Of a DNA stretch of 64,000 nucleotides, positions 35,803 through 47,651 are shown piece by piece. Both the position numbers and the translations under genes were made by a program. The notes under the pieces are model-generated. The model was given only the letters and a program-made list of their open reading frames with translations, did no database searches and had not been told where the DNA came from. Location: positions 124,001 through 188,000 of the IMG/VR virus record IMGVR_UViG_3300023174_000045. One strand, given 5' to 3'. How positions within the stretch are numbered: the first letter of the stretch is position 1; the number at the start of each line of letters is the position of its first letter.

Positions 35803-36017
35803 CAGCAACAAAAGCCACCGGCGTTGAAGGATGTTTAATACGCGGCCATGACGGCGAATATTACTTCCGTGTGTACGATGCTGAACACAATTTTGTGGAC
35901 TATGATTTGGCGCACACGGATTTGAGCATCACAATCACAGACCCAGATGCGTTCTTTTACAGCGATGAATACAGTGCTAGACTGGATCACGCACCTGCCA
36001 CACTGGGAATAGAATAA
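35799..36017 (+). CDS. Hypothetical protein
   Basis: ATGA overlap. Confidence 0.7.
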   Translation: MTATKATGVEGCLIRGHDGEYYFRVYDAEHNFVDYDLAHTDLSITITDPDAFFYSDEYSARLDHAPATLGIE

Positions 36018-36271
36018 TGGCCACCACTCCCGTTGACGACGACTTTGACATGCCCGATCTCACTGACGAGATGCTGTCGGAGTTCAAACCGCTGACTGAC
36101 TTGGCTCACACTGATCTGCACATGGGCGCGGCTGTAGTGCAACCATTCAACGCACCCAAAGTAGAGCCGTTTGATTGGGTCAGCGTCATTGCAAATGCCG
36201 CTGTGGGCGCAGGTTATCTGGTTGCTGTTTGGCTATTTGTGAAGGTATGGGCGTGGGTGTTGTTCAGTTAG
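36017..36271 (+). CDS. Hypothetical membrane protein
   Basis: C-terminal hydrophobic helix. Confidence 0.65.
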   Translation: MATTPVDDDFDMPDLTDEMLSEFKPLTDLAHTDLHMGAAVVQPFNAPKVEPFDWVSVIANAAVGAGYLVAVWLFVKVWAWVLFS

Positions 36272-36317
36272 GCAAAATTGCTCTAGCTAGGTCACAGGGC
36301 TAAAACGTTATATATAC

Positions 36318-36455
36318 ATGAAGCGAGAAATCATCAATCAAGTACGCGAGCTGTTAGAACGCAATCTCAGCACCGCAGAAATAGCGCACAGGATGGGCAT
36401 TGATTTGGACTTGGTCAAAATGGCCATAGACGTTATCAACCAACTGCTGACCTAA
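36318..36455 (+). CDS. 45-aa HTH-like protein
   Basis: LSTAEIAHRMGIDLDLV; not in track. Confidence 0.6.
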   Translation: MKREIINQVRELLERNLSTAEIAHRMGIDLDLVKMAIDVINQLLT

Positions 36456-36466
36456 CCCACTCTGGG

Positions 36467-36495
36467 TTGACTATAAATAAAATTCCTGTTACAAT
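36467..36495 (+). promoter_or_regulatory. Promoter for first tRNA block
   Basis: TTGACT-17-TACAAT. Confidence 0.7.
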
Positions 36496-36503
36496 ACATT
36501 ATT

Positions 36504-36578
36504 GGGCTGATAGCTTAATGGTAAAGCAGTCGACTCATAATCGATTGAGTCTAGGTTCAATTCCTAGTCAGCCCACCA
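36504..36578 (+). tRNA. tRNA CAT, Ile2-like (or Met)
   Basis: Cloverleaf, CGACTCATAATCG arm as in ileX, CCA. Confidence 0.85.
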
Positions 36579-36581
36579 ACA

Positions 36582-36656
36582 CTGGCGTTAGTATAATGGA
36601 TAATACAAAGAGCTTCTACCTCTTGAATGTGGGTTCGATTCCTGCACGCCGGACCA
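36582..36656 (+). tRNA. tRNA-Arg(TCT)
   Basis: Cloverleaf, CCA. Confidence 0.9.
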
Positions 36657-36670
36657 GTAAATACAACAGT

Positions 36671-36753
36671 GCGGGTGTGGTGGAATTGGTAGACACACCT
36701 GGTTTAAGCCCAGACGCTAAGGCGTGAGAGTTCAAGTCTCTCCACCCGTACCA
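36671..36753 (+). tRNA. tRNA-Leu(TAA)
   Basis: Cloverleaf with variable arm, CCA. Confidence 0.9.
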
Positions 36754-36764
36754 AAGGAACAATC

Positions 36765-37238
36765 ATGAGCGATATCAAAATTGAACCACATCATGACAGC
36801 GAAGGCACTGAAGATGACTTCTTTGATGACTTTCGTGCCAATGTGGCTCGATTAGAAGCCGAGCGCCGAGCCAGTGATGAGTTTAAAATCAACAACATGG
36901 AATATGACATGAGCCAGGCCGAGTGGTTTGTAAGCAAGGTGCGTGGCAGTGACAACTACGCACAGAACTTGTATGCTGCCATGTGCAACAACAGTTTTCA
37001 AAAGCAAGATGTTTGGCTGGTGCTGAAAGATGCGCACTGGAGTTGTAGTTGGCGTTACGCTGGTGGTGTTGTGGCTGACTTTAGAGATTGCAACGAAGAC
37101 TACATGAACTGGTACTGCTCAGGCATTGGTCCCAAAGAAGACACTGAGTTTGTGGGCGAAGGCACAGTCACAGACGAAATAGCCGCAGATTTGGCACTCC
37201 TGGGATGGCGTGTGATTGAAGATCCCGACAGCGAATAA
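36765..37238 (+). CDS. Hypothetical protein
   Basis: SD AAGGA. Confidence 0.75.
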   Translation: MSDIKIEPHHDSEGTEDDFFDDFRANVARLEAERRASDEFKINNMEYDMSQAEWFVSKVRGSDNYAQNLYAAMCNNSFQKQDVWLVLKDAHWSCSWRYAGGVVADFRDCNEDYMNWYCSGIGPKEDTEFVGEGTVTDEIAADLALLGWRVIEDPDSE

Positions 37239-37242
37239 CAGC

Positions 37243-37860
37243 ATGTACAAATACACCAATGCTACCCCCGATTGGCTGTATCAACAGCCAAATTTAAGTG
37301 TTGATGCATTACCGATTATCAAAAAAGAATTACTAACATTGTTTGAGTTGAGCAAAGAATTCAGTTTGGTTCCTTATACCAGCACATACATGGAAACGGG
37401 CAACAACGAGTTCATAGATCAGTACTGTCCAACATTGTGCAAAGAATTGAAAAAATTAAACCTACGAGATTCACTCAAGGTATTGGCATTTATTTCTGTT
37501 GTGATAGACAAACATTTTCCCGCCCATGTAGACGCTGAGTCAGAAGTGGCGTTGAATATTCCTTTGATCAACTGCGATGGTACCTATACTGTTTGGTACG
37601 ACGGCCAGACACAGTCAAAAGAATTTGACGATTATTTGATAGGCGTAGAATCTGCAAGAACTGCAATAGAAGGAACTGCTGATAGTTTGATAGAAATTGA
37701 TCGCTGCGAGGCCAACGTACCACGTTGGATCAATGTGAATGTGTTGCATAGACCTGAAACACAGCATGACAAATTAAGAGTTGCGGCTAGTTTGCGTTTT
37801 GATCCCGAACCATTGGACAATCATAGGCAGCTTTGGTCGCATTTGACAGTGTCAAAATGA
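37243..37860 (+). CDS. 2OG-Fe(II) oxygenase-like
   Basis: PAHVD, LNIPL, HRP, RVAASLRF. Confidence 0.65.
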   Translation: MYKYTNATPDWLYQQPNLSVDALPIIKKELLTLFELSKEFSLVPYTSTYMETGNNEFIDQYCPTLCKELKKLNLRDSLKVLAFISVVIDKHFPAHVDAESEVALNIPLINCDGTYTVWYDGQTQSKEFDDYLIGVESARTAIEGTADSLIEIDRCEANVPRWINVNVLHRPETQHDKLRVAASLRFDPEPLDNHRQLWSHLTVSK

Positions 37861-37871
37861 ACATGTTGAAA

Positions 37872-37900
37872 TTGACTGTAAACTTGTGTTTTGTTATAAT
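37872..37900 (+). promoter_or_regulatory. sigma70-type promoter
   Basis: TTGACT-17-TATAAT. Confidence 0.75.
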
Positions 37901-37992
37901 ACTAGCAGTGACGTTCACAAGCTATCAAAATCTAGCTGTAGACATCGGTCAAGCCTGGAGTTTGTGTAAATAACAGTCAACCGGAGACTGCT

Positions 37993-38148
37993 ATGAATTT
38001 GGTCAAATATCGAGATGCTGAGATGTGGACGTATACTTGGTTTTATGTGGGTGATACCGGACACATTGTGAGTCCGTATTTTGAAACAGAAAAACAAGCT
38101 CAGGAGTGGTTTGATCAAATTTTTGAAGGTGTTGAGGAGCAGTTATGA
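37993..38148 (+). CDS. 51-aa hypothetical protein
   Basis: SD GGAG, ATGA overlap with next gene. Confidence 0.6.
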   Translation: MNLVKYRDAEMWTYTWFYVGDTGHIVSPYFETEKQAQEWFDQIFEGVEEQL

Positions 38149-38537
38149 AAAAAGTGTTATTTGGTTTGTTATTGGTATCTGGTACAGTTCTGGCACAAGA
38201 TGTGTATGTGGTGGGCGCCCAGCCCAGGTATGTTACTGTGCAACAACAACAATGTCATGTAGTCAACGTGACTGAAAACAACAGCGGCGTTGGCACTGTG
38301 ATTGGTGCTGTGGCTGGTGGTGTAATCGGACATCAAGTGGGTCGTGGGTTTGGTCGCGATGTGGCCACTGTGTTGGGCACCGGCATTGGCGCTTCGGTGG
38401 GACAACGCATTGGACAAGATCAACAACAAACAGTGACCAAGCAAGTTTGTGACATGGTACCAGTTGTCATACAACAAGGTGAAACTGTGACATTTAATTA
38501 CAAGGGACGAGTGTTTACACAAGTTTTTGGTAATTAA
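38145..38537 (+). CDS. Secreted glycine-zipper 2TM protein (YcfJ-like)
   Basis: Signal peptide, GAVAGGVIGHQVGRG. Confidence 0.8.
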   Translation: MKKVLFGLLLVSGTVLAQDVYVVGAQPRYVTVQQQQCHVVNVTENNSGVGTVIGAVAGGVIGHQVGRGFGRDVATVLGTGIGASVGQRIGQDQQQTVTKQVCDMVPVVIQQGETVTFNYKGRVFTQVFGN

Positions 38538-38539
38538 AG

Positions 38540-38930
38540 TTATTGCTGTATGAAGCCGAGAGAAAAGTGTTCTGGACGGGGGTGCGAATCCCCCCAGGTC
38601 CACCATAAAGAAATTTGATGAAACCAAAAAAAGTAAAACAGTATTTTGTTATAGTAGACAAAGATGACACAGTAAAAAGAGTGTGTTGGGCACCTTTACT
38701 GTGGGATATTCCTAACCTGGGATATCGTTTTACAGGATTTGACGGTGGTATTCCAAAGTTTCTTTATGTCGGGCCTGCATAGTTTCGACAGGGCAACAAG
38801 TAACAGAGTGGACAGCACGGTAGGCGATGACCGTTAATCAAGCAAAAAACGTAAATGCAAACGACGAACAGTTCGCTTTGGCAGCCTAAACACTGCCTAG
38901 GGTAGGAAATACCTCGTAACAGAAACAACC
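38540..38930 (+). ncRNA. ssrA: Circularly permuted (two-piece) tmRNA, tag ANDEQFALAA
   Basis: T arm and CCA end at 38605 precede 5' GGGCCTG at 38771; G3:U70; tag 38857-38889; ends approximate. Confidence 0.92.
38618..38782 (+). CDS. Possible 54-aa ORF in tmRNA intervening segment
   Basis: Open ATG-TAG, no clear SD. Confidence 0.3.
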   Translation: MKPKKVKQYFVIVDKDDTVKRVCWAPLLWDIPNLGYRFTGFDGGIPKFLYVGPA

Positions 38931-38960
38931 CAAAAGGCCTTGACGGGCCTTTTGTCTTTG
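38931..38960 (+). terminator. Intrinsic terminator after tmRNA
   Basis: CAAAAGGCCT-TGAC-GGGCCTTTTG. Confidence 0.8.
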
Positions 38961-38988
38961 TGTATACTACACTATTGAGGAGAACAAC

Positions 38989-39180
38989 ATGAGCAAAGGC
39001 ACACGACCCCGTCCGTCAGTGGTCAGTCAACAAGAACTGGCTGCAAGGCACGAAGCCATATTTGGCCGGAAGCCACCACGAGAACGTTATGTTCCGCCAC
39101 CCTTGCCACCTGAACTGGCAGGACCCAGTTCTTTTGAACAGCAGTTGGGCACCACAAAACTTCCGCCCGGAAGAACATAA
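38989..39180 (+). CDS. Small Pro-rich hypothetical protein
   Basis: SD GAGGAG. Confidence 0.7.
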   Translation: MSKGTRPRPSVVSQQELAARHEAIFGRKPPRERYVPPPLPPELAGPSSFEQQLGTTKLPPGRT

Positions 39181-39205
39181 ATTGGCAAAAGACATTTAAA
39201 AATCG

Positions 39206-39234
39206 TTGACTTTCTTTCATTCATCATATATAAT
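39206..39234 (+). promoter_or_regulatory. Promoter of attenuator 1
   Basis: TTGACT-17-TATAAT; ATG 6 nt downstream. Confidence 0.8.
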
Positions 39235-39239
39235 ACACT

Positions 39240-39347
39240 ATGAACAAGCAAAACGCCCAACTGTCCTTTGAGATACCCTCACATGATTTACACGATTATG
39301 CACGTGAGGCGCTGGCCTATACTAACAGCGGGTGGAGCGGTACCTAA
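39240..39347 (+). CDS. Leaderless 35-aa leader peptide (attenuator 1)
   Basis: MNKQNAQLSFEIPSHDLHDYAREALAYTNSGWSGT. Confidence 0.65.
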   Translation: MNKQNAQLSFEIPSHDLHDYAREALAYTNSGWSGT

Positions 39348-39367
39348 TACAAAAGTACTACTCAAGC

Positions 39368-39400
39368 AAAAACCCGCCACCTAGGCGGGTTTTTCTTTTT
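39368..39400 (+). terminator. Attenuator 1 terminator
   Basis: AAAAACCCGCC-ACCTA-GGCGGGTTTTT plus T tract. Confidence 0.88.
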
Positions 39401-39404
39401 GTGC

Positions 39405-39548
39405 TAGACCAATAATGGGATAGGTGTTATACTAGAGACTAGTTAGGAAAGCAACACAGCAAAGTTTGCAAAGACCCTACAAAGCGAAGGGATTTTGCAA
39501 AACAAGTTGACCAGAATAGCACAAGGTGTTATACTAGAGACTAGTTAG
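39405..39548 (+). promoter_or_regulatory. Tandem promoters sharing a 25-nt repeat
   Basis: TAGACC/TTGACC-17-TATACT; AGGTGTTATACTAGAGACTAGTTAG at 39422 and 39524. Confidence 0.75.
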
Positions 39549-39731
39549 AAAGCAAGGCGGTCCTCGAATGTAAGAACCCACGCAGAAATGCAAAAAGGGT
39601 TGGAACCAAGGGACACGAAGCGAGTTTGTAGACTCGGCCTCCGCAGGTTAAAACAGCACAGTCGATCGAGACTAGTTGAAAGGTTCGTTAAAATTTTGAT
39701 TGTCATGTAGTCCCTGTCTAGTTACAGGGTA

Positions 39732-39963
39732 CTATATGTAAACACATTAGGGTTACCTAGCCGTTAGGGGTGAACGAAGGCCAGACAGCGCAAGCCGGAT
39801 ACCCATGAAGCAGGAGGGTTCTACAGTATGACGAGACACCATCGAGTCAAAGGGCAAGAACTATCAAACTCCAGGAAGGCGACGGAACAACTGGGCCCGT
39901 AATGAGGTCTTGACGCAAGTTGGTGATGCGTGTCAAGAACTTCCCTAATGTATTTTCATATAG
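39732..39963 (+). ncRNA. Helix-closed ncRNA A (~230 nt)
   Basis: CTATATG..CACATTAGGG pairs with CCCTAATGT..CATATAG; internal hairpins. Confidence 0.7.
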
Positions 39964-39966
39964 CAT

Positions 39967-40042
39967 GCACGGTTCGTCTATCGGTTTAGGACACTAGCCT
40001 TTCACGTTAGTAAGACGGGTTCGATTCCCGTACCGTGTACCA
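39967..40042 (+). tRNA. tRNA-Glu(TTC)
   Basis: Cloverleaf, CCA. Confidence 0.92.
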
Positions 40043-40045
40043 AGT

Positions 40046-40185
40046 TGTCGAGGAACTCCATCCTTAAACGGGGGGCAACACTGGGCCTACGAAGTGGGTG
40101 ATTGCAAAAACCAGAAAGAGCAACGTTGACATTGACGAAAAAATGTCTTACGATGAATAAACGTCCTAATAGGGGCTTGTCGACA
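40046..40185 (+). ncRNA. Candidate ncRNA B
   Basis: TGTCGA/TCGACA closing helix, imperfect extension. Confidence 0.45.
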
Positions 40186-40208
40186 CACAAGTAGCCTGTA
40201 CTAATTTT

Positions 40209-40294
40209 GGAGATGTGGCAGAGTGGTTGATTGCACCAGACTGTAAATCTGGCCCCTAAAAAGCGCGGTGGTTCGAATCCATCCGTCTCCACCA
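40209..40294 (+). tRNA. tRNA-Tyr(GTA)
   Basis: Cloverleaf with variable arm, CCA. Confidence 0.92.
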
Positions 40295-40303
40295 ATTTTG
40301 TTT

Positions 40304-40455
40304 TTATAGTCAAGCATCGATACAGGTATCGTGTAAGGACGCTTACGCTATTCGGGTCCAACCGGCCGGGAACGGATCCTAATATAACTGCTATCGGCTG
40401 TTGCACTCTTAGCGGAGGACGCATAAATTGAGCATCTCTCGGTGCTTGACTATAA
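40304..40455 (+). ncRNA. Helix-closed ncRNA C
   Basis: 17-bp closing helix, three internal hairpins. Confidence 0.7.
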
Positions 40456-40461
40456 GAATTT

Positions 40462-40537
40462 GGTCCTAAAGTGTTCATGGACGCACGACGGCTTGTCACG
40501 CCGTAAGAGTGGGGATCGTTACCCCCTAGGACCGCCA
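40462..40537 (+). tRNA. tRNA-Asp(GTC)
   Basis: Cloverleaf, atypical T loop ATCGTTA, CCA. Confidence 0.88.
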
Positions 40538-40543
40538 AGTTTT

Positions 40544-40622
40544 GCAGATAATGGATAGGGCGGGCATCTATTGGTGCCTAATACTAGTTGCCGCAGAGGT
40601 TCGAGTCCTCTGGTCTGCACCA
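40544..40622 (+). ncRNA. tRNA-like RNA 1 (acceptor and T arm, no canonical D/anticodon arms)
   Basis: GCAGAT/GTCTGC, A73-CCA, AGAGG-TTCGAGT-CCTCT. Confidence 0.65.
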
Positions 40623-40628
40623 AGTTTT

Positions 40629-40727
40629 TGCGTTATAGTATAGTGGCCAGTACGCAAGGGCCCACACAATGAAAATTGTATGGTGGGAATTGCCAGTGTA
40701 GCGATGGTTCGATTCCATCTAACGCAA
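40629..40727 (+). ncRNA. tRNA-like RNA 2 (anticodon arm replaced by GAAA-capped long hairpin)
   Basis: 7-bp acceptor, D arm with GG, T arm; no encoded CCA. Confidence 0.7.
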
Positions 40728-40734
40728 TATCATT

Positions 40735-40952
40735 TTTGAGAGTGTCAGCAAGCGCAGTCACGCTATCTAGGTAAGTTCGAACTACCGAAATAGTAAAAGG
40801 GGACGGGTTCAACTCCCGGGGGATCGGAAGATCCCTGCAGATTGGTTGCTAACTGGACAGGTACCCAAGTGATATCCATCGCGAGCGAGGTCAGGCTAGG
40901 CGGCCGGTAGGTCCTGAATAAATCTACGATAAAAGTGACGTAGGCTCTCAAA
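40735..40952 (+). ncRNA. YrlA-like RNA with circularly permuted tRNA domain
   Basis: T arm, then GGAA-closed acceptor helix, then D arm (40804-40854); 9-bp terminal helix. Confidence 0.65.
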
Positions 40953-40960
40953 TTCAATCG

Positions 40961-41037
40961 GCGACCATAGCTCATTTGGATAGAGCACTGTGCTACGAAC
41001 GCAGGGGTGGGAGGTTCGAATCCTTCTGGTCGCGCCA
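40961..41037 (+). tRNA. tRNA-Arg(ACG)
   Basis: Cloverleaf, CCA. Confidence 0.92.
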
Positions 41038-41132
41038 TGTAAAAACACTCTAAACTGGACGCAGGATCTGAGAAGGTTGAACGTAGGTTGATCACTACTA
41101 GTAAGCTGGAGATCAAGAGTGTTTCTACATGG
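41035..41132 (+). ncRNA. Inter-tRNA helix element
   Basis: CCATGTAAAAACACTCT / AGAGTGTTTCTACATGG. Confidence 0.7.
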
Positions 41133-41207
41133 TGCGTGTCGTCAAGCGGTCAAGACCTCGGATTGTGATTCCGATATGCGTGGGTTCGAATCCCATCATG
41201 CACCCCA
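41131..41207 (+). tRNA. tRNA-His(GTG)
   Basis: Encoded G-1:C73, CCA. Confidence 0.92.
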
Positions 41208-41230
41208 ACACAAGATAAATAAAAGAATAA

Positions 41231-41305
41231 CGCGGGGTAGAGAAGCAGTAACTCGTTAGGCTCATAACCTAAAGATCGGCGGTGCGAATCCGTCCTCCGC
41301 AACCA
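41231..41305 (+). tRNA. tRNA-fMet(CAT)
   Basis: C1:A72 mismatch; only two G-C pairs next to anticodon loop. Confidence 0.85.
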
Positions 41306-41321
41306 AATTTTAGGAGTTTTT

Positions 41322-41729
41322 ATGATAGCAATTAACACGGTAATAAAACCGATGGTGGGCCACGAACAAGAAGCAATTGACAATTTCTATACTTTTCATA
41401 AATCACCACACCCGGAGTTATTTGAATTTTTTAAAGAGTTTGTGGATCAAAATTTAATTTTGAATACGATGTTTTGGCAGCCATATGATGACCGAAATCT
41501 CAATCATTTGCTTAGATACTATGCTGTCAATATGGAAAATGCCGAAATTTTTCAAGAAAAATTATTGAGTGAGTCTGCAGATTTTTCAATGAAAAAATTC
41601 TGGGATCAAAATAAATTTGACTATTCAATTGAGTTGACAGAAATAAACTTTGATGAAGAATTTCCACAATACTATGTTGTAGATAATGAGTCTGGTGGAG
41701 TTTGGGGAGACGTTTGGCCATTGCTTTGA
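41322..41729 (+). CDS. Hypothetical protein, paralogue A
   Basis: SD AGGAG; FEFFKEFVDQNLILN. Confidence 0.75.
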   Translation: MIAINTVIKPMVGHEQEAIDNFYTFHKSPHPELFEFFKEFVDQNLILNTMFWQPYDDRNLNHLLRYYAVNMENAEIFQEKLLSESADFSMKKFWDQNKFDYSIELTEINFDEEFPQYYVVDNESGGVWGDVWPLL

Positions 41730-42208
41730 TATGCGTTGAAGTTTATTGCAGGCCAACAAAAAAATGTGATTTTGTTGCTGTTCGATCGTGGACAGAATTT
41801 ATATGTGCTGAGTATCCAGCGATGTTTGACTTCTTTCAAGAGTGCATTGATCAAAATTTAATTGTGAACAAATTTGCATTAAATGTAGATGGAGTTACAG
41901 ACTTATGGAAATACTACTCCTCCAATCAAACTCAAGCTGAAATTTTTCTTGAAAAATTTAAAAATATGCCTTTGAATTTTTCTAAAGAGAAGTTTTCAAT
42001 GAAAGAATTTTGGAATCGTTATGAGTTTGAAATTGATATGTCACTCAAAGAAATAGATTTTGACAACGAAAAAGAATTATTTGATTTGATAAACAAAGAC
42101 ACCGGTGAGATGTGGGCTACTACATTTCCATTAGGTGGACCGCTTGATAATTATTACCAGTTAGAAAAACATTTTCAGCCACAGTGGTTGACAACAAAAG
42201 ATAAATAA
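41726..42208 (+). CDS. Hypothetical protein, paralogue B (probable TTG start)
   Basis: FDFFQECIDQNLIVN aligns to A; start chosen by alignment. Confidence 0.65.
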   Translation: MICVEVYCRPTKKCDFVAVRSWTEFICAEYPAMFDFFQECIDQNLIVNKFALNVDGVTDLWKYYSSNQTQAEIFLEKFKNMPLNFSKEKFSMKEFWNRYEFEIDMSLKEIDFDNEKELFDLINKDTGEMWATTFPLGGPLDNYYQLEKHFQPQWLTTKDK

Positions 42209-42216
42209 ACTATAAT
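42188..42216 (+). promoter_or_regulatory. Promoter of attenuator 2
   Basis: TTGACA-17-TATAAT exact consensus. Confidence 0.85.
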
Positions 42217-42223
42217 AGGAACT

Positions 42224-42334
42224 ATGATGAAACAACAATTCTGTTCAATGTCCAAGCCCCAAACACTCCAGGCAACAACCTGGCTGTTGGCCAATGGCTC
42301 ATTCAACAGCATTCCAGGAGAACCGGGGTTCTGA
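42224..42334 (+). CDS. Leaderless 36-aa leader peptide (attenuator 2)
   Basis: MMKQQFCSMSKPQTLQATTWLLANGSFNSIPGEPGF. Confidence 0.7.
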   Translation: MMKQQFCSMSKPQTLQATTWLLANGSFNSIPGEPGF

Positions 42335-42361
42335 TTAGACTATATTCGTATACCTAACAAG

Positions 42362-42396
42362 AACCCCGGAACTAAACACTCCGGGGTTTTTCATTT
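42362..42396 (+). terminator. Attenuator 2 terminator
   Basis: AACCCCGGA/TCCGGGGTT 9 bp plus T tract. Confidence 0.85.
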
Positions 42397-42399
42397 AGT

Positions 42400-42578
42400 G
42401 CAACGGCAACGCGAGCCGGTATCACTCTAAACTACAAATGTGGGCGGCCCGGAGGATGGGAAGCTGGTGGTGAAAACGCCAGTGGTAAAATTCCGGAGTA
42501 TCGAAGCATTCTCGGGCCTTGGGGCAAGTGGGTTCATCCATGAAGAGTGCTTCGATACACACATTGGCAACAGTGTGT
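42400..42578 (+). ncRNA. Structured leader / candidate ncRNA D
   Basis: 15-bp helix 42498-42512/42544-42558 plus nested hairpins. Confidence 0.55.
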
Positions 42579-42588
42579 TGAAATTTAT

Positions 42589-42662
42589 TCCGGTGTAGTA
42601 TAATGGCAGTGCGGCGGTCTCCAAAACCGTTAGTGGGAGTTCGATTCTCTCCACCGGAGCCA
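42589..42662 (+). tRNA. tRNA-Trp(CCA)
   Basis: Cloverleaf, CCA. Confidence 0.92.
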
Positions 42663-42669
42663 AGTTAAT

Positions 42670-42744
42670 GGGGGGTTGGTGCTAACGGGAACACATGTGC
42701 TTTGCAAGCATGAGTTAAGGGTTCGATTCCCTTACCCTCCACCA
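42670..42744 (+). tRNA. tRNA-Ala(TGC)
   Basis: G3:U70, CCA. Confidence 0.9.
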
Positions 42745-42766
42745 TAGTCAGTATAAGTATTCACAA

Positions 42767-42856
42767 GGTGCGGTCCTATAATGGTATTAGAGCAGATTGC
42801 TAATCTGTCGCTCGGCGTAATCCGGGTTCTGAGTTCGAGTCTCAGTCGCACCGCCA
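42767..42856 (+). tRNA. tRNA-Ser(GCT)
   Basis: Long variable arm, G73, CCA. Confidence 0.9.
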
Positions 42857-42863
42857 AGAACAT

Positions 42864-42939
42864 TCCCTCGTAGCACAGCGGTAGTTGCGCTTCACTGTTA
42901 ATGAAGATGTCGTTCGTTCGATCCGAACCGAGGGAGCCA
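42864..42939 (+). tRNA. tRNA-Asn(GTT)
   Basis: Cloverleaf, CCA. Confidence 0.92.
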
Positions 42940-42957
42940 AATAAAAAAGGAAACGCA

Positions 42958-43140
42958 ATGTCAGCATTTAACACACACAACGACCCATTGAAACACAAGA
43001 CTGGTAAGCCCAGACTTGGTCCAATGAATGTAGAACAGTTGACCCGACTGTTGGAGAGTGCCAGACCCAAACATCGTGCAAAGATTCAACGTGCCTTGGA
43101 CTACAAGAAAACAATTCAAAAGATCATAGCAAAGGCTTGA
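42958..43140 (+). CDS. Basic 60-aa hypothetical protein
   Basis: SD AAGGA. Confidence 0.65.
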   Translation: MSAFNTHNDPLKHKTGKPRLGPMNVEQLTRLLESARPKHRAKIQRALDYKKTIQKIIAKA

Positions 43141-43145
43141 TATCC

Positions 43146-43219
43146 GCCCTACTAGTATAATGGCATTACACTGGTTTTGTAATCCTGTGATGGCAGTTCG
43201 ATTCTGTCGTGGGGCACCA
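43146..43219 (+). tRNA. tRNA-Thr(TGT)
   Basis: Cloverleaf; two U:U mismatches in anticodon stem. Confidence 0.82.
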
Positions 43220-43271
43220 AATTTTTACAAAGGAGATCTGTCATGAGTAGTGACAAGAGTGACAAACCTAT

Positions 43272-43346
43272 GGGGGTATAACTTAACGGCTAAAGTAGTG
43301 GGCTTTTAACCCATTAATCAGAGTTCGATTCTCTGTGCCCCTACCA
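43272..43346 (+). tRNA. tRNA-Lys(TTT)
   Basis: Cloverleaf, CCA. Confidence 0.9.
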
Positions 43347-43420
43347 TATAAAAACACATTAACAGCGTCGTACCGGTCGCCGGACTTAGGTTGAATTCCT
43401 AATAGTGTGTTTCTATATGG
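43344..43420 (+). ncRNA. Inter-tRNA helix element
   Basis: CCATATAAAAACACATT / AGTGTGTTTCTATATGG. Confidence 0.7.
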
Positions 43421-43494
43421 TAATATAGCATAGTGGCTAATGCAGTTGCTTCATACGCAACCCACCGTTGGTTCGAGTCCAACTATTACCACCA
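43419..43494 (+). tRNA. tRNA-Met(CAT), elongator-like
   Basis: Cloverleaf, CCA. Confidence 0.85.
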
Positions 43495-43500
43495 AGTTTT

Positions 43501-43575
43501 GGCCAGTTAGCTCAGGGGTAGAGCAACGTCTTGATAAGGCGTGGGTCGGTGGTTCGAGACCACCACTGGCTACCA
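43501..43575 (+). tRNA. tRNA-Ile(GAT)
   Basis: Cloverleaf, CCA. Confidence 0.92.
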
Positions 43576-43582
43576 ATTCAGT

Positions 43583-43658
43583 TGGGGTGTCGCCTAGAGG
43601 CCTAAGGCACTGGTCTTTGAAATCAGTATCATGAGTTCGAATCTCATCTCCCCTGCCA
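43583..43658 (+). tRNA. tRNA-Gln(TTG)
   Basis: Unpaired 1:72, G73, CCA. Confidence 0.85.
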
Positions 43659-43665
43659 AACAACG

Positions 43666-43694
43666 TAGACAAACTTTGATGTTTGTTGTATAAT
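43666..43694 (+). promoter_or_regulatory. Internal promoter
   Basis: TAGACA-17-TATAAT. Confidence 0.7.
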
Positions 43695-43702
43695 TACACA
43701 AT

Positions 43703-43777
43703 GCGGGATTAACTCAGGGGTAGAGTGTCAGCCTTCCAAGCTGTTCGTCAGCGGTTCGAATCCGCTATCCCGCTCCA
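43703..43777 (+). tRNA. tRNA-Gly(TCC)
   Basis: U73, CCA. Confidence 0.92.
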
Positions 43778-43797
43778 CTTTAACAGAAAGAAACAAC

Positions 43798-44004
43798 ATG
43801 ACAATTGAGAGTGCCGCAACCTTTTTGGTATGTGTAATTTTATTGAGCTGTGGTATCATAGTGCTGGCCGGTCTAGTATTATTGATCAACAACCTGTTGC
43901 ATCGCTACTGGAAAGATCTAAACTGGACTCTACCTGAGAGCATGCAGTCCGTACGTTATGTTGAAGTTGACAAAACTCAAGAACCCCATTTAGACCGCAA
44001 GTAA
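43798..44004 (+). CDS. Small membrane protein
   Basis: N-terminal hydrophobic helix. Confidence 0.6.
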   Translation: MTIESAATFLVCVILLSCGIIVLAGLVLLINNLLHRYWKDLNWTLPESMQSVRYVEVDKTQEPHLDRK

Positions 44005-44048
44005 TACCGACCCCTTGACGGTTTAGGTCCCTTGTACTTGCGGTCTAA
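43990..44048 (+). other. 14-bp inverted repeat before tRNA-Pro
   Basis: TTAGACCGCAAGTA / TACTTGCGGTCTAA. Confidence 0.7.
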
Positions 44049-44055
44049 TTTTTTA

Positions 44056-44129
44056 CTCCGATTGGTGAAATGGTATCATTCATGGTTTGGGACCATGTGG
44101 CGCAAGTTCGATTCTTGCATCGGAGACCA
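44056..44129 (+). tRNA. tRNA-Pro(TGG)
   Basis: Cloverleaf, CCA. Confidence 0.9.
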
Positions 44130-44135
44130 TGTAAT

Positions 44136-44213
44136 GCAACGGTGGCAGAGCGGCCCAATGCACGGGATTGCAAATCCCGAAAACCACTGGTTCAAATCCA
44201 GTCCGTTGCTCCA
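44136..44213 (+). tRNA. tRNA-Cys(GCA)
   Basis: U73, CCA. Confidence 0.92.
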
Positions 44214-44227
44214 ACAAGAAAGTACCT

Positions 44228-44473
44228 ATGTGGGAATATGTTTTAACGTTTTTTGCTGTGTTGTTCACAGATATTTTTTATACCTACTACCTAAAAGCAG
44301 TACAAGATGAACGTGTGATGGCTGCCAGTGTTTGGGCCACTGTTGTATTTTTGGTAGCCTGCGTAGCAGTGATCAACTACACAACAAATTACTGGTTGCT
44401 GATTCCTGCAGGGCTAGGTGCGTTTTGTGGCACTTGGATAGGCATGAGATTACGGGCTCAACAAAAGCAGTAG
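44228..44473 (+). CDS. Small multi-TM protein (DUF2179-like)
   Basis: Three hydrophobic helices, GAFCGTWIG. Confidence 0.6.
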   Translation: MWEYVLTFFAVLFTDIFYTYYLKAVQDERVMAASVWATVVFLVACVAVINYTTNYWLLIPAGLGAFCGTWIGMRLRAQQKQ

Positions 44474-44493
44474 TGATCGTCTATAAATATAGC

Positions 44494-44889
44494 ATGTCCA
44501 TTTACAATCAGTATTTTTGCCAACATTGTCGTTCTGCGTATTCTAGATCACAAGAAAAATTAACTCCAGGATATTGCAGTTTGAATTGTTCTGTGGTTGA
44601 GTCAAAAAGACAGTCGCAAAAAACTTTCAAAGAACTAACTTTGGAAGACAGAATCAAAAATCGACCTGGTGGCACATATCTTGAGTACAACAGTGGTATT
44701 CCTCCTGAACTGGCTGTAGAAACAACCCCAGTCAAAAGAAGAGAGTACAAATGTGTTTGTTGCGGCATTGCTGATTACAATGGCCGTCCGTTGAAACTAC
44801 AACTGTTTCACCATGACGGTAATCAAAAGAATTTTGACCCAGACAATGTTAAATTTTTGTGTCCAAATTGTTTGAGCCAACATCAATAA
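44494..44889 (+). CDS. HNH-family protein, possibly degenerate
   Basis: CVCC, LQLFHHDGN..N..FLCPNCL; TATAAATA upstream. Confidence 0.7.
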   Translation: MSIYNQYFCQHCRSAYSRSQEKLTPGYCSLNCSVVESKRQSQKTFKELTLEDRIKNRPGGTYLEYNSGIPPELAVETTPVKRREYKCVCCGIADYNGRPLKLQLFHHDGNQKNFDPDNVKFLCPNCLSQHQ

Positions 44890-44895
44890 ATCAAA

Positions 44896-44985
44896 GGAAG
44901 TGTGGCAGAGTCCGGCTGATTGCACCTGTCTTGAAAACAGACGGCTCGAAAGGGTCCGTGAGTTCGAATCTCACCGCTTCCACCA
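44896..44985 (+). tRNA. tRNA-Ser(TGA)
   Basis: Long variable arm; A73 rather than G73. Confidence 0.88.
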
Positions 44986-44991
44986 AAAATC

Positions 44992-45066
44992 GCCTTGTTA
45001 ACTCAGCGGTAGAGTAGCGCCTTTACACGGCGAATGTCGGCGGTTCGATCCCGTCACAAGGTACCA
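44992..45066 (+). tRNA. tRNA-Val(TAC)
   Basis: Cloverleaf, CCA. Confidence 0.92.
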
Positions 45067-45072
45067 ACCAAT

Positions 45073-45148
45073 GGCTCGATAGCTCAGTTGGTAGAGCAGT
45101 AGACTGAAAATCTATGTGTGGGCGGTTCGATCCCGTCTCGAGCCACCA
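45073..45148 (+). tRNA. tRNA-Phe(GAA)
   Basis: Cloverleaf, CCA. Confidence 0.93.
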
Positions 45149-45345
45149 AATGTATTATCCAACACAAACTCATGTTGTTGTGGTTCAAATATGGGATCGT
45201 CTGCATATTGAGGCACAGTGTGTTGGTAAAGAGGATTCACTGTGAATTCTTTGGTTGTGGTCCATGATCGGTTGGGCCTGTAGGGTTCATGGCTAAATGC
45301 GGCATACAGCACCTGCACAGTGTCTCGTAGTTCATATGGAATCAT
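45112..45345 (-). CDS. Possible antisense ORF overlapping tRNA-Phe 3' end
   Basis: 77 aa, TAAATA just upstream on minus strand. Confidence 0.35.
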   Translation of the reverse strand: MIPYELRDTVQVLYAAFSHEPYRPNRSWTTTKEFTVNPLYQHTVPQYADDPIFEPQQHEFVLDNTFGGSRRDRTAHT

Positions 45346-45357
45346 ATTGTATTTAAT

Positions 45358-45434
45358 GCCCCGGTGATGGAATTGGTATACATGCCGGTCTTAGAAGCCG
45401 TATTTTAGGAGTTCGAGTCTCCTCTGGGGCACCA
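45358..45434 (+). tRNA. tRNA-Leu(TAG), short variable loop
   Basis: 77 nt, A73, CCA. Confidence 0.85.
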
Positions 45435-45439
45435 ATTCA

Positions 45440-45514
45440 GGATGTTTAGCACAGCGGTAGTGCATCACCTCGACACGGTGAGGGTCAGTGGTTCAATTCC
45501 ACTAACATCCACCA
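45440..45514 (+). tRNA. tRNA-Val(GAC)
   Basis: Cloverleaf, CCA. Confidence 0.9.
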
Positions 45515-45521
45515 CAAATCT

Positions 45522-45600
45522 GCCCCCATGGACAAATCGGTAAAGTCGTCTCTCTCAAAAGGAGAAGTTGTTCTCTGTTCGAATCAGAGTGGGGGTACCA
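45522..45600 (+). tRNA. tRNA-Leu(CAA), short variable loop
   Basis: 79 nt, A73, CCA. Confidence 0.85.
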
Positions 45601-45608
45601 TTCCTAAT

Positions 45609-45685
45609 GCCCTGGTGGCGCAATTGGTAGACGCACCACTTTGAGGGGGTGTACAGTGTGAGTTCGAGTCTCACCCAGGGCACCA
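45609..45685 (+). tRNA. tRNA-Leu(GAG), short variable loop
   Basis: 77 nt, A73, CCA. Confidence 0.82.
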
Positions 45686-45686
45686 A

Positions 45687-45715
45687 TTGACAACAAATTC
45701 AAAATCAATTACAAT
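45687..45715 (+). promoter_or_regulatory. Internal promoter
   Basis: TTGACA-17-TACAAT. Confidence 0.75.
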
Positions 45716-45723
45716 ACACACAC

Positions 45724-45797
45724 GGGCTGTTAGTTAAATGGGATAACTCTGCCATGGCATGGCAGCATCGGGAGTTCGACTCTCCCACGGTCCACCA
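45724..45797 (+). tRNA. tRNA-Ala(GGC)
   Basis: G3:U70 and A32-U38 as in bacterial Ala(GGC). Confidence 0.92.
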
Positions 45798-45818
45798 CTA
45801 TCAAGAAAGGAGTCAGTG

Positions 45819-46253
45819 ATGAGTGAATTTAACGTATTGGTTGGCAAGCGCATCAATGGCTTGTTCATAGGCGAAGATGCTTGGGCCTTGGTGTTTCGCG
45901 ACATCAATGAACGTTACTATTGTTTTCGCACAGAGAACGATTGTTGCAACGCTGTGTGGTTCAATCACGTAAACGGTGTAGAAACTGTGCTGGGCGAAGG
46001 CAACTTGTTCGATGTCCTGCGTGGTGCCATGGTAACTGCTGTGGAAGACAAAGGCTGGACTGATGATCGCGACGACGAAGATGGCTACGAAGTTGTGCAA
46101 GATGGTTTCTGGACCATAAAAACAGACCGTGGCTACATAGACTTAGAAGTACGCAACAGTCACAACGGCTACTATGGTGGCCGTGTGCGGTATGATGAAG
46201 AGTCCAAGCCTGGTGACATCAAAGATTTACAAGCAGTGACTGAAGATTTTTAA
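45819..46253 (+). CDS. Hypothetical protein
   Basis: SD AAGGAG; RNSHNGYYGG. Confidence 0.75.
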   Translation: MSEFNVLVGKRINGLFIGEDAWALVFRDINERYYCFRTENDCCNAVWFNHVNGVETVLGEGNLFDVLRGAMVTAVEDKGWTDDRDDEDGYEVVQDGFWTIKTDRGYIDLEVRNSHNGYYGGRVRYDEESKPGDIKDLQAVTEDF

Positions 46254-46330
46254 CGGAATATGGCGCAGCCTGGCAGCGCACTTGCATGGGGTGCAAGGGG
46301 TCGCAAGTTCGAATCTTGCTATTCCGACCA
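46254..46330 (+). tRNA. tRNA-Pro(GGG)
   Basis: Cloverleaf, CCA. Confidence 0.92.
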
Positions 46331-46355
46331 ACTATAAATAACCTTGAAAGTGTAT

Positions 46356-46826
46356 ATGAAAAAACTTGATATAGAACAAGTGGCCGAATTTATCCGGACT
46401 CAAAGTCCAGAAACACGCATCTATCTTGGATGCGACAGTGAACGCATCAAAATTGATGGTGCATGGTGGGCTGACTATGTGTTGGCCATTGTGGTTCACA
46501 TCAACGGCAACAACGGTTGCAAACTGTTTGGTGAAGTACATCGTGAACGTGTGTGGGATCAAAAAGCATCCAAGCCGGCCATGCGGCTCATGACTGAAGT
46601 TTACAAAGTTTCAGAACTGTACTTGAAACTGGCAGAAGTGTTGGAAGGGCGCGATGTTGAAGTTCACTTGGACATCAACCCTGACGAAATGCACGGATCA
46701 AGTTGTGTTGTCAGCCAAGCCATCGGTTACATCAAAGGCACATGTAATGTGATTCCTTTTGTGAAGCCTGAGGCTTTTGCAGCCAGCTATGCTGCCGACA
46801 GATTCAAAGGCTTGCGGGCGGCGTAG
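46356..46826 (+). CDS. RNase H-like YkuK/DUF458 family protein
   Basis: IYLGCDS, RLMTEV, EVHLDIN, KPEAFAASYAAD. Confidence 0.8.
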   Translation: MKKLDIEQVAEFIRTQSPETRIYLGCDSERIKIDGAWWADYVLAIVVHINGNNGCKLFGEVHRERVWDQKASKPAMRLMTEVYKVSELYLKLAEVLEGRDVEVHLDINPDEMHGSSCVVSQAIGYIKGTCNVIPFVKPEAFAASYAADRFKGLRAA

Positions 46827-46832
46827 AATATT

Positions 46833-46908: not shown

Positions 46909-46922
46909 ACTAAAAAGTTTGT

Positions 46923-47646: not shown

Positions 47647-47651
47647 GACAA

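Follow-up and report, generated by a model that had tools for sequence, protein, structure and literature searches.

Ahead of the tRNA gene array of an uncultured jumbo phage, we found a near-consensus promoter followed by an ATG at the predicted transcription start, a 35-codon open reading frame (ORF) and an intrinsic terminator, behind which lie genes for tRNA-Glu, Tyr, Asp, Arg(ACG), His and Met(CAT). The window analyzed here is a stretch of 64,000 nucleotides (positions 124,001 to 188,000 of IMG/VR virus record IMGVR_UViG_3300023174_000045), and it contains a second unit of the same layout that heads the Trp-to-Cys tRNA block. The coordinates of both units are collected in Table 1. These observations lead us to suggest that both units are ribosome-mediated transcription attenuators, probably leaderless, whose codons poll the tRNAs that they control.

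Table 1. Features of the two leader units and the tRNA blocks behind them (window coordinates)
Feature	Coordinates	Strand	Description
Promoter P1	39206-39234	+	-35 TTGACT (39206-11), 17-nt spacer, -10 TATAAT (39229-34); 11 of 12 matches
Leader ORF 1, putatively leaderless	39240-39347	+	35 codons, stop TAA; ATG 5 nt after the -10, no Shine-Dalgarno sequence
Hairpin A	39277-39309	+	CCUCAC (39277-82) with GUGAGG (39304-09); encloses the His-Asp-(Leu-His-Asp)-Tyr-(Ala)-Arg codons
Proposed control codons	39282-39308	+	CAT GAT TTA CAC GAT TAT GCA CGT GAG (H D L H D Y A R E)
Hairpin B	39310-39330	+	CGCUG (39310-14) with CAGCG (39326-30); proposed 1:2 anti-antiterminator
Antiterminator 5' strand, unit 1	39328-39333	+	GCGGGU; can pair with ACCCGC (39372-77)
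Small spacer hairpin	39339-39359	+	GGUAC/GUACU, spanning the stop codon
Intrinsic terminator 1	39368-39400	+	20 nt after the stop; stem 39368-39394 (11 pairs, 6 G-C, 5-nt loop), T tract; -17.4 kcal/mol
Promoter-like site Px	39405-39433	+	TAGACC, 17-nt spacer, TG-TATACT
Second copy of Px	39507-39535	+	
tRNA block 1	39967-41305	+	Glu(TTC), Tyr(GTA), Asp(GTC), tRNA(CTA), Arg(ACG), His(GTG), Met(CAT)
Unit 2	42188-42393	+	
Promoter P2	42188-42216	+	TTGACA, 17-nt spacer, TATAAT; 12 of 12 matches
Leader ORF 2	42224-42334	+	36 codons, stop TGA
Antiterminator 5' strand, unit 2	42323-42332	+	CCGGGGUUCU, overlapping the stop codon; pairs with 42360-69
Intrinsic terminator 2	42360-42393	+	5' arm 42360-69, loop ACUAAACAC, 3' arm 42381-90, T tract; -18.1 kcal/mol
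tRNA block 2	42589-44213	+	Trp, Ala, Ser, Asn, Thr, Lys, Met, Ile, Gln, Gly, Pro, Cys

Architecture of the two units

Every element that a sequence-only reading of unit 1 had described is present, including the distal half of the leader, which reads E-I-P-S-H-D-L-H-D-Y-A-R-E-A-L-A-Y and uses GAG, CAT/CAC, GAT, TAT and CGT codons, and the two promoter-like sites after the terminator, of which that reading had warned. It had not listed a tRNA(CTA) and a 99-nt tRNA-like hit that also lie in block 1. The ensemble is far above chance, as a scan of both strands of the window for a promoter, an ATG within 12 nt, an ORF of 12-60 codons and a terminator within 70 nt found only these two units, and in about 20 related loci it found only their homologues.

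The same two-unit layout occurs in a large family of uncultured jumbo phages. Near and distant DNA searches of the phage collection found nothing for this region among cultured phages, and the nearest cultured phage carrying the array's RNase H-like gene, Stenotrophomonas phage DLP_6 (58% identity), has a tRNA array but no such unit. Likewise, a more distant contig with 30 tRNAs has many promoters but no plus-strand terminator units. A comparison with Rfam gave no riboswitch or leader family above threshold, the only weak hit over unit 1 being the rnk leader at 28 bits against a cut-off of 55.

Conservation of the leader frames

Unit 1 is kept in 34 distinct relatives. In 34 of 34 distinct copies, which were retrieved through the terminator alone, the leader ORF stays open at 31-36 codons and every indel is a multiple of 3. 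The P1 hexamers are invariant while the spacer varies, and the terminator stem is invariant while its loop varies. Because the criteria of our layout scan would bias a count of open frames, unit 2 was assessed from its own terminator motif, and 32 of 32 distinct unit-2 terminators are preceded by an ORF running toward the terminator. Across the family, the ATG lies 5-7 nt after the -10 in 33 of 40 leaders and 10 nt after it in the other 7, a geometry that is consistent with a leaderless mRNA. The order of the tRNA genes in block 1 is the same in close relatives, and the unit travels with the tRNA-Glu block when upstream genes differ.

Alternative RNA pairings

In unit 1, an RNAalifold consensus revealed a trp-like chain of alternative pairings in which the 3' arm of hairpin B overlaps the antiterminator strand, which in turn competes for the 5' arm of the terminator, with the His/Asp/Tyr/Arg/Glu codons sitting just 5' of hairpin B. 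One pair of hairpin A co-varies through synonymous changes (A-U 25, G-C 6, G-U 3, A-C 0), and three of the indel sites lie in its loop. The arms of hairpin B are invariant, whereas its loop varies in sequence and length, and the antiterminator strand is an island of nucleotide conservation between variable codons. The antiterminator forms in the nascent RNA when a ribosome is modeled upstream. In this window, however, it is only 6 bp, and 620 of 5000 dinucleotide shuffles (12%) reach a 6-nt complement, so this one element is not above chance on its own; moreover, the terminator wins at equilibrium, so any effect must be kinetic. Homologues have 7-11 pairs, and diverged homologues show 7-9 antiterminator pairs in the nascent fold, with paired sequences that track the terminator arm, such as GCGGGUCUU with AAGACCCGC in one related locus (L141). 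The AGUACUAC motif of the small spacer hairpin is also kept in diverged unit-1 homologues. A second pairing register that the sequence-only reading had proposed (GGUGG with CCACC) is specific to a few sequences and does not co-vary consistently, and a long-range pairing of CGCCC (39254-58) with GGGUG, seen in the fold of the window, is not kept in relatives, where the local hairpin B replaces it in the consensus.

The structural evidence is much stronger for unit 2. Its antiterminator is the minimum-free-energy fold, and the 10-nt complement is reached by 0 of 5000 shuffles. In a ribosome-mask model, the probability of the terminator is at most 0.25 with the A site at codons 2-29 and 1.0 from codon 31 to the stop. 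In 30 diverged relatives the antiterminator is 86.7% paired, with 18 doubly changed cells against 6.1 +/- 2.7 in shuffles (0 of 500), and pair 35-90 is C-G in 25 and U-A in 5 with no mismatch, while the terminator, which shares the same 5' arm, is 98.2% paired and also co-varies. One relative (L059) has two uncompensated mismatches in the antiterminator. Nonsynonymous changes preserve RNA pairs in unit 2, and the GGGUC core of the antiterminator is read in two different frames in different lineages.

Leader codons and the tRNA genes behind them

The majority form of the unit-1 control region in relatives is H-D-Y-R-E, one codon for each of the five tRNAs behind it, and such a run occurs in 7e-4 of random 31-residue peptides and in 0 of 126,456 real 5-mers. 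Codons 2-32 of leader 2 include a cognate codon for 20 of the 23 non-Met tRNA species encoded downstream and for 0 of the 5 block-1 species. Coverage of 20 or more is seen in 2 of 11,877 real windows and both properties together in 0, while the random codon model gives 1 in 300,000.

In more distant phages the peptides diverge, but their codons follow the tRNA genes placed behind each unit. The comparative test that the sequence-only reading had proposed, namely whether leader codons co-vary with downstream tRNA identity, came out positive. Family-wide, 72% of downstream species are covered against 17% of upstream-only species, and unit-1-like leaders cover 85% of their own block against 45% of later blocks. 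Counted per tRNA as downstream with codon, downstream without, upstream with and upstream without, the values are 21/1/0/9 for Cys, 26/1/0/4 for His, 18/0/1/4 for Arg(ACG) and 10/1/6/9 for Tyr; the association also involves Glu and Asp. Block-1 sets of {E,Y,D,C} are preceded by leaders containing CEREYD and YESDCE, and a set of {E,R,L,D,I,T} by one containing SIERTT..IYERD. There are counterexamples, as five related leaders and one further leader (L147) keep a Tyr codon in leader 2 although tRNA-Tyr lies upstream, two loci (L083 and L088) have His, Trp and Cys codons in leader 1 with only Glu and Asp tRNAs behind it, another (L080) has CGT without Arg(ACG) in its block, and Val tRNAs are covered in only 15 of 31. 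In addition, a phylogenetically independent-pairs test was underpowered, as it ran on a single-gene tree with 4 of 27 well-supported branches; about 7 independent pairs go the expected way and about 0 the other way, but no single tRNA reaches significance. The alignable leader 1 of one relative (L108) has lost His and Arg codons where those tRNAs moved to block 2, and single-unit lineages with Glu, Asp and Tyr tRNAs downstream have those codons in the leader.

Discussion

Our results support the interpretation of the sequence-only reading that unit 1 is a leader-peptide attenuator of the trp/his type, and we consider it the best explanation, with a probability of about 0.6, that unit 1 is a leaderless, ribosome-mediated transcription attenuator and one of two that head this tRNA array. 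In the proposed mechanism, which rests on sequence evidence without experimental data, host RNA polymerase would start at or next to the AUG, as inferred from the promoter geometry, and a 70S ribosome would translate the leader while the RNA is being made, as inferred from frame conservation. A segment near the end of the ORF (AGCGGGU) can pair backward with CGCUG to form hairpin B or forward with the 5' arm of the terminator. A ribosome that runs to the stop codon would cover this segment, so that the terminator forms and transcription stops, whereas a ribosome held up at the His, Asp, Tyr, Arg or Glu codons just upstream would mask the backward partner and leave the segment free, so that the antiterminator forms and the transcript continues into tRNA-Glu, Tyr, Asp, Arg and His. 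Because the control codons are read by the very tRNAs encoded downstream, the circuit would be a supply-and-demand feedback on tRNA availability. Px, directly after terminator 1, is conserved across the whole family (its second copy sits in a stretch that relatives lack), so block 1 can be transcribed without readthrough and unit 1 can only add to tRNA transcription, not gate it alone. Unit 2 is proposed to work the same way without a backward partner, in that the antiterminator is the default fold and only a ribosome reaching the last codons lets the terminator form; no sigma-70-like promoter is predicted between terminator 2 and tRNA-Trp.

Some features of unit 1 do not fit neatly into this model. 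The simple ribosome-mask model does not confine sensing to the H-D-Y-R-E codons, as a stall anywhere from codon 2 to about 26 raises the probability of the antiterminator above the no-ribosome level, most strongly at codons 10-26. Leader 1 also holds unmatched codons, including Leu TTA and Ala GCA inside the cluster and many outside it, and its core QLSFEIPS is conserved at the nucleotide level, which the model does not explain.

It is possible, although unlikely, that the units are general sensors of translation capacity that report any failure to translate the leader, be it few ribosomes, any scarce tRNA or translation shut-off, rather than the specific tRNAs encoded behind them. In line with this, every stall at codons 2-29 of unit 2 gives readthrough in the model, the model does not single out the H-D-Y-R-E codons of unit 1, and leader 2 uses 14 amino-acid types. 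However, leader composition tracks which tRNA genes lie downstream rather than upstream of each unit, and leader 2 in the window avoids all five block-1 species, which a generic sensor would not need. We also regard it as doubtful that unit 1 is an independent mini-gene whose 31-36-residue peptide has a function of its own that is not linked to the tRNA genes. While the core QLSFEIPSHDYREALAY is strongly conserved in the close clade, a separate promoter follows the terminator and the antiterminator is weak in this window, outside the close clade the peptide sequence is not conserved, whereas the architecture, the position before the tRNA block and the antiterminator are. The pairing-preserving nonsynonymous changes and the two reading frames of the antiterminator core in unit 2, as well as the linkage of the unit to the tRNA-Glu block, likewise speak against this view.

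Less likely still is a noncoding element, in which the unit makes a small RNA of about 155 nt, or the terminator merely ends transcripts of the upstream 63-codon gene, and the ORF is incidental. The region is highly structured (-50 kcal/mol), its nucleotide-level conservation exceeds what a coding constraint needs and no terminator lies between the 63-codon ORF and unit 1, but the in-frame indels, the ORF that is open in every one of the 34 copies and the ATG fixed at the predicted transcript start across the family argue against it. A T-box-like riboswitch that reads uncharged tRNA by base pairing without translation appears very improbable. The downstream genes are tRNA-related and the sequence GGGUGG...GGUACC of the window may vaguely resemble the T-box motif, but no T-box or other riboswitch match was found at E up to 1 in 36000-48500, the GGGUGG is not kept in relatives and the conservation of the frame argues for translation.

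Phage tRNA genes have usually been treated as passively expressed codon supplements or as spare parts against tRNA-cleaving defenses, and how their expression is controlled is essentially unknown. We speculate, and consider it about as likely as not, that a large family of uncultured jumbo phages controls its tRNA gene arrays with leaderless leader-peptide attenuators, each of which polls exactly the tRNA species encoded behind it. This would be the first case of tRNA genes under ribosome-mediated attenuation and would provide a built-in sensor that raises phage tRNA output when particular tRNAs become limiting, possibly following host shut-off or attack by host anticodon nucleases, although this trigger is inference. 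It would extend classical attenuation from amino-acid biosynthesis to the decoding apparatus itself and would give a link between tRNA-targeting immunity and phage countermeasures. If the units, which are compact at about 190 nt, work as proposed, they could serve as sensors of the availability of chosen tRNAs in living cells.

Phage tRNA arrays that act as counter-defense against tRNA-targeting host systems (PMC10264068, PMC11555353) give a physiological setting in which sensing tRNA shortage would pay, as host nucleases deplete particular tRNAs and phage tRNAs replace them. Text searches of PMC10264068 found no mention of attenuators, leader peptides or terminators, and no leader-peptide control of phage tRNA genes turned up in our literature searches. 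As proposed for our units, T-box riboswitches sense the state of a specific tRNA and switch a terminator/antiterminator ahead of translation-related genes, but they bind tRNA directly and need no translation. The pheM leader attenuator of the E. coli pheST operon appears to use ribosome-mediated attenuation to control a component of the decoding apparatus in response to the supply of charged tRNA; it probably differs in being chromosomal, in controlling an aminoacyl-tRNA synthetase and in having a Shine-Dalgarno-led leader with Phe codons only.

In mycobacteria, polycysteine leaderless short ORFs act as cysteine-responsive attenuators (bioRxiv 10.1101/834739), and there, as proposed here, a leaderless short ORF at the 5' end of an operon tunes downstream expression through the translation of particular codons. 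Those units use Cys runs to control cysteine-metabolism operons in a bacterium, whereas the leaders described here are not single-amino-acid runs, precede tRNA genes and have, most clearly in unit 2, an explicit terminator/antiterminator pair that co-varies. The trp/his/leu/thr/ilv leader-peptide attenuators of enterobacterial amino-acid operons (modeled in PMC1183508) share with our units a short promoter-proximal ORF, an intrinsic terminator and mutually exclusive pairings (proposed as 1:2, 2:3 and 3:4 in unit 1; 2:3 and 3:4 in unit 2), control codons just 5' of region 1, a stop codon next to or inside region 2 and, as in trp, an antiterminator weaker than the terminator, and multi-amino-acid leaders exist already in thr (Thr and Ile) and ilv (Ile, Leu and Val). 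In contrast to these systems, the genes proposed to be regulated here are tRNA genes rather than biosynthetic enzymes, so the signal, tRNA supply, is the product itself, and the leaders carry one or two codons each for 5 to about 20 different tRNA species instead of runs of one codon, on a phage-borne and putatively leaderless mRNA that in unit 1 is followed by its own promoter.

Genomic context and anatomy

The window is part of a 225-kb IMG/VR contig of an uncultured jumbo phage, whose T4-type DNA polymerase is about 48-51% identical to those of Sinorhizobium phage Phosso and Agrobacterium phage Atu_ph07. Positions 36.5-47.7 kb hold 34 tRNA genes and a two-piece tmRNA, all on the plus strand, and no cultured phage shares DNA similarity with the region of the finding. 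A sequence-only reading had described a promoter, a short ORF with no Shine-Dalgarno sequence and a terminator ahead of the tRNA block that begins with tRNA-Glu (block 1), and we confirmed that all of these elements are present (unit 1), as are the two promoter-like sites that it had noted after the terminator. We also found a second unit with the same anatomy (unit 2). In a scan for a promoter, an ATG within 12 nt, an ORF of 12-60 codons, and a terminator within 70 nt, only these two units were found on both strands of the 64-kb window, and only their homologues were found in about 20 related loci.

Positions of the features in the window
Feature	Position	Details
Two-piece (permuted) tmRNA	38510-38980	just upstream of unit 1; tag peptide ANDEQFALAA; Rfam beta_tmRNA model, 134 bits
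Unit 1 promoter, -35	39206-11	TTGACT; 17-nt spacer to the -10
Unit 1 promoter, -10	39229-34	TATAAT
Leader 1 start codon	39240	ATG five bases after the -10; no Shine-Dalgarno sequence; ORF of 35 codons
5' half of leader 1	39258-39281	CAACUGUCCUUUGAGAUACCCUC, reading Q-L-S-F-E-I-P-S
Hairpin A	39277-82 with 39304-09	CCUCAC with GUGAGG
Hairpin B	39310-14 with 39326-30	CGCUG with CAGCG
Possible unit 1 antiterminator pairing	39328-33 with 39372-77	GCGGGU with ACCCGC
Leader 1 stop codon	39345-47	TAA
Terminator 1	39368-39400	20 nt after the ORF; 11-bp stem with a T tract; -17.4 kcal/mol
Promoter-like sites after terminator 1 (Px and its second copy)	39405-33 and 39507-35	
Promoter Px and following repeats	39405-39680	TAGACC, 17-nt spacer, TG-TATACT; direct repeats of GAGACUAGUU at 39437-46, 39539-48, 39668-77
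tRNA with anticodon CTA	40544-40622	inside tRNA block 1; called 'Pyl' by ARAGORN
Rfam tRNA hit	40629-40727	99 nt, 43 bits
tRNA-Met(CAT)	41231-41305	ends block 1
Two tandem paralogous ORFs	41322-42208	about 135 residues; no Pfam match; between block 1 and unit 2; the second ends inside promoter P2 of unit 2
Unit 2	42188-42393	perfect consensus promoter; ATG 7 nt after the -10; 36 codons; terminator
Unit 2 antiterminator pairing	42323-32 with 42360-69	CCGGGGUUCU (last codons and stop) with the terminator's 5' arm
Loop of terminator 2	42370-42380	9 nt, ACUAAACAC or ACUAAAAAC
Stretch between terminator 2 and tRNA-Trp	42400-42588	190 nt
DUF7448 gene	45819-46253	neighbour of the RNase H-like gene
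RNase H-like gene (PF04308)	46344-46826	embedded in the tRNA array

The tmRNA is conserved in relatives with variant tags. The tRNA with anticodon CTA is of the amber-suppressor type, and a similar one occurs in locus L108; this may point to stop-codon reassignment or suppression by the phage. The 99-nt Rfam tRNA hit is not called by ARAGORN in standard mode but is called tRNA-Ser(TGA) with a 9-nt insert when introns are allowed; its nature is unclear. The tRNA-Met(CAT) that ends block 1 has, by inspection, a C1/A72 mismatch, as bacterial initiator tRNAs do, while its anticodon stem has only two G-C pairs, and a Met(CAT) gene sits immediately before unit 2 in most of the two-unit relatives.

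Unit 1 in close relatives

We fetched copies of unit 1 through a pattern in the spacer and terminator, which is blind to the ORF, and obtained 34 distinct sequences from IMG/VR and metagenomes. Every copy keeps the promoter hexamers, with a variable spacer between them, and every copy keeps the ATG and an open frame of 31-36 codons, with all length differences being multiples of three. The majority form of the variable stretch reads S-H-D-Y-R-E, whereas the window has H-D-L-H-D-Y-A-R-E and other forms are H-D-Y-T-R-E, H-D-Y-R-R-E, and H-E-L-H-D-Y-R-R-E. Moreover, the unit stays with the tRNA-Glu block when other genes are inserted upstream, as in the related loci L003 and L017.

RNAalifold places the His-Asp-Tyr-Arg codons inside hairpin A, one pair of which co-varies through two synonymous changes, TCA to TCG and CGT to CGC, with counts of A-U 25, G-C 6, G-U 3, and A-C 0. 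Immediately 3' lies hairpin B, whose 3' arm overlaps the strand that can pair instead with the terminator's 5' arm. This is the 1:2, 2:3, 3:4 topology of the trp leader, with the His, Asp, Tyr, Arg, and Glu codons just 5' of region 1. AGCGGG and GGUACCUAA are islands of nucleotide conservation between codons that vary even at the amino acid level. The 5' half of leader 1 is almost invariant at the nucleotide level in the 34 relatives, third codon positions included, which neither the attenuator model nor the predicted hairpins explain.

The evidence for a switch in unit 1 of this window is nevertheless weak in several respects. The 6-nt antiterminator complement is reached by 12% of dinucleotide shuffles. 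In a ribosome-mask folding model the terminator always wins at equilibrium, and the antiterminator appears only in the nascent RNA, for stalls anywhere from codon 2 to about 26 and most strongly at codons 10-26. Any effect must therefore be kinetic, which is also true of trp by textbook energies, but the thermodynamics do not single out the H-D-Y-R-E codons. In addition, promoter Px follows the terminator directly in all relatives and is conserved across the whole family. The window carries an extra copy of this promoter that relatives lack, and the direct repeats that follow Px could be an operator or a processing signal.

Alternative pairings in unit 2 and its homologues

Unit 2 is a clean switch by these criteria. 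The 10-nt complementarity between the end of the ORF and the terminator's 5' arm was reached by no shuffle in 5000, and the antiterminator is the minimum-free-energy fold of the whole leader. In the mask model, P(terminator) is at most 0.25 with no ribosome or with the A site at codons 2-29 and is 1.0 from codon 31 to the stop. No sigma-70-like promoter is predicted between this terminator and tRNA-Trp. The stretch between them is conserved and contains a helix whose arms co-vary (CCGG/CCGG, UCGA/UCGA, CUGG/CCAG) and a hairpin ACACAC..GUGUGU next to the tRNA, and it is a structured leader or a small RNA of unknown role.

The RNase H-like gene inside the array, which may act in tRNA processing, is very conserved, with 546 relatives in IMG/VR and up to 58% identity in cultured phages of Stenotrophomonas, Xanthomonas, and Synechococcus. 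The 80 best IMG/VR loci (74-99% identity) show the same two-unit layout in most contigs and a single unit in some. Terminators of unit 2 identified by their own motif are preceded by an open ORF running toward the terminator in 32 of 32 distinct cases.

We aligned 30 distinct unit-2 sequences, in which the antiterminator helix is 86.7% paired, with four pairs changed on both sides and 18 doubly changed cells against 6.1 +/- 2.7 in shuffles (0 of 500), while registers slid by 1-3 columns are at most 56% paired. Pair 35-90 is C-G in 25 sequences and U-A in 5, with no mismatch, and because the terminator partner of column 90 is a U that tolerates both A and G, this co-variation is specific to the antiterminator. 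The terminator is 98.2% paired on the same 5' arm. The GGGUC core of the antiterminator is read as GGG UCC in most lineages and as AGG GUC in others (loci L100, L104, L127, and L133), and within the ORF a hairpin pair takes four forms through nonsynonymous changes. These points indicate RNA-level rather than peptide-level constraint. The loop of terminator 2 is nearly invariant across diverged phages (homologues in loci L076-L155), which is unusual for a terminator loop and suggests a sequence-specific partner.

Unit-1 homologues outside the close clade show 7-9 antiterminator pairs in the nascent fold, and the paired sequences follow the terminator arm, for example GCGGGUCUU with AAGACCCGC in locus L141 and an extended helix around GGGGUCUUUG with CAAAGACCC in locus L080. 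The window's 6-bp version is therefore a shortened member of a real class.

Leader codons and downstream tRNA genes

An H-D-Y-R-E-type run, meaning five consecutive residues that are a permutation of the five block-1 amino acids, is expected in 7e-4 of random 31-residue peptides and was found in 0 of 126,456 5-mers of real ORFs. Leader 2 (codons 2-32) has a cognate codon for 20 of the 23 non-Met tRNA species encoded downstream, that is, 11 of 11 in the Trp-to-Cys block and 9 of 12 in the later block, and for none of the five block-1 species. Coverage of 20 or more occurs in 2 of 11,877 real 31-codon windows, and both properties together occur in none of these and in 1 of 300,000 random draws. 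Thirteen close homologues keep 17-20 of 23 despite about ten variable positions.

Across the family, 72% (448 of 624) of downstream tRNA species have a codon in the sensing part of unit-2-like leaders, against 17% (16 of 95) of species encoded only upstream, and unit-1-like leaders cover 85% of their own block against 45% of later blocks, although these tests are not corrected for relatedness. The informative cases are tRNAs that change sides. The Cys codon, for example, sits at different leader positions in different lineages (F-C-S, or T-M-C) and is replaced by R, Y, H, or L where tRNA-Cys lies upstream.

Leader codons for tRNAs that change sides
tRNA	Downstream with codon	Downstream without	Upstream with	Upstream without
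Cys	21	1	0	9
His	26	1	0	4
Arg(ACG)	18	0	1	4
Tyr	10	1	6	9
Asp	2	1	0	21
Glu	1	2	0	22

Block-1 tRNA sets and the matching leader 1 clusters
Block-1 tRNA set	Leader 1 cluster
{E,Y,D,R,H}	SHDYRE
{E,Y,D,C}	CEREYD, YESDCE
{E,R,L,D,I,T}	SIERTT..IYERD
{S,E,Y,D,M}	SYNYEHM

Block-1 sets and their leaders match in the same way. Locus L108 has a leader 1 that can be aligned with the window's (QLSREIPSLNYASEALDYD) and has lost the His and Arg codons where those tRNAs moved to block 2, the tRNA block behind unit 2, and two tRNA-Leu genes arrived. There are, however, counterexamples, as five related leaders plus that of locus L147 keep a Tyr codon with tRNA-Tyr upstream, loci L083 and L088 have His, Trp, and Cys codons in leader 1 with only Glu and Asp tRNAs behind it, and tRNA-Val is covered in only half the cases. 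On a single-gene tree in which only 4 of 27 branches are well supported, about seven independent pairs go the expected way and about none the other way, but no single tRNA reaches significance. Four single-unit lineages with Glu, Asp, and Tyr tRNAs downstream carry those codons in the leader.

Discussion

Our results lead us to conclude that the best-supported reading, based on sequence and predicted structure alone, is that both units are leaderless, ribosome-mediated attenuators, and the interpretation offered by the sequence-only reading for unit 1 is supported by comparative evidence. In this view, a ribosome that reaches the end of the leader covers the antiterminator strand and the terminator forms, while a ribosome delayed at upstream codons leaves that strand free and transcription continues into the tRNA genes. 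Because the leaders are built from codons read by the tRNAs behind them, the circuit would raise phage tRNA output when those tRNAs are scarce and lower it when supply is restored. For unit 1 this would add to the basal promoter Px, while for unit 2 it appears to be the only route.

The trigger might possibly be host tRNA loss, anticodon nucleases, or host shutoff, although this is inference. Phage tRNAs can replace tRNAs destroyed by host defences (PMC10264068, PMC11555353), but we found no description of leader-peptide control of phage tRNA genes in full-text searches of the literature. Leader-peptide attenuation as such is a known mechanism, and leaderless attenuating short ORFs are known in mycobacteria (bioRxiv 10.1101/834739), whereas the target proposed here (tRNA genes), the polling design of the leader, the inferred leaderless start, and the phage setting appear to be new.
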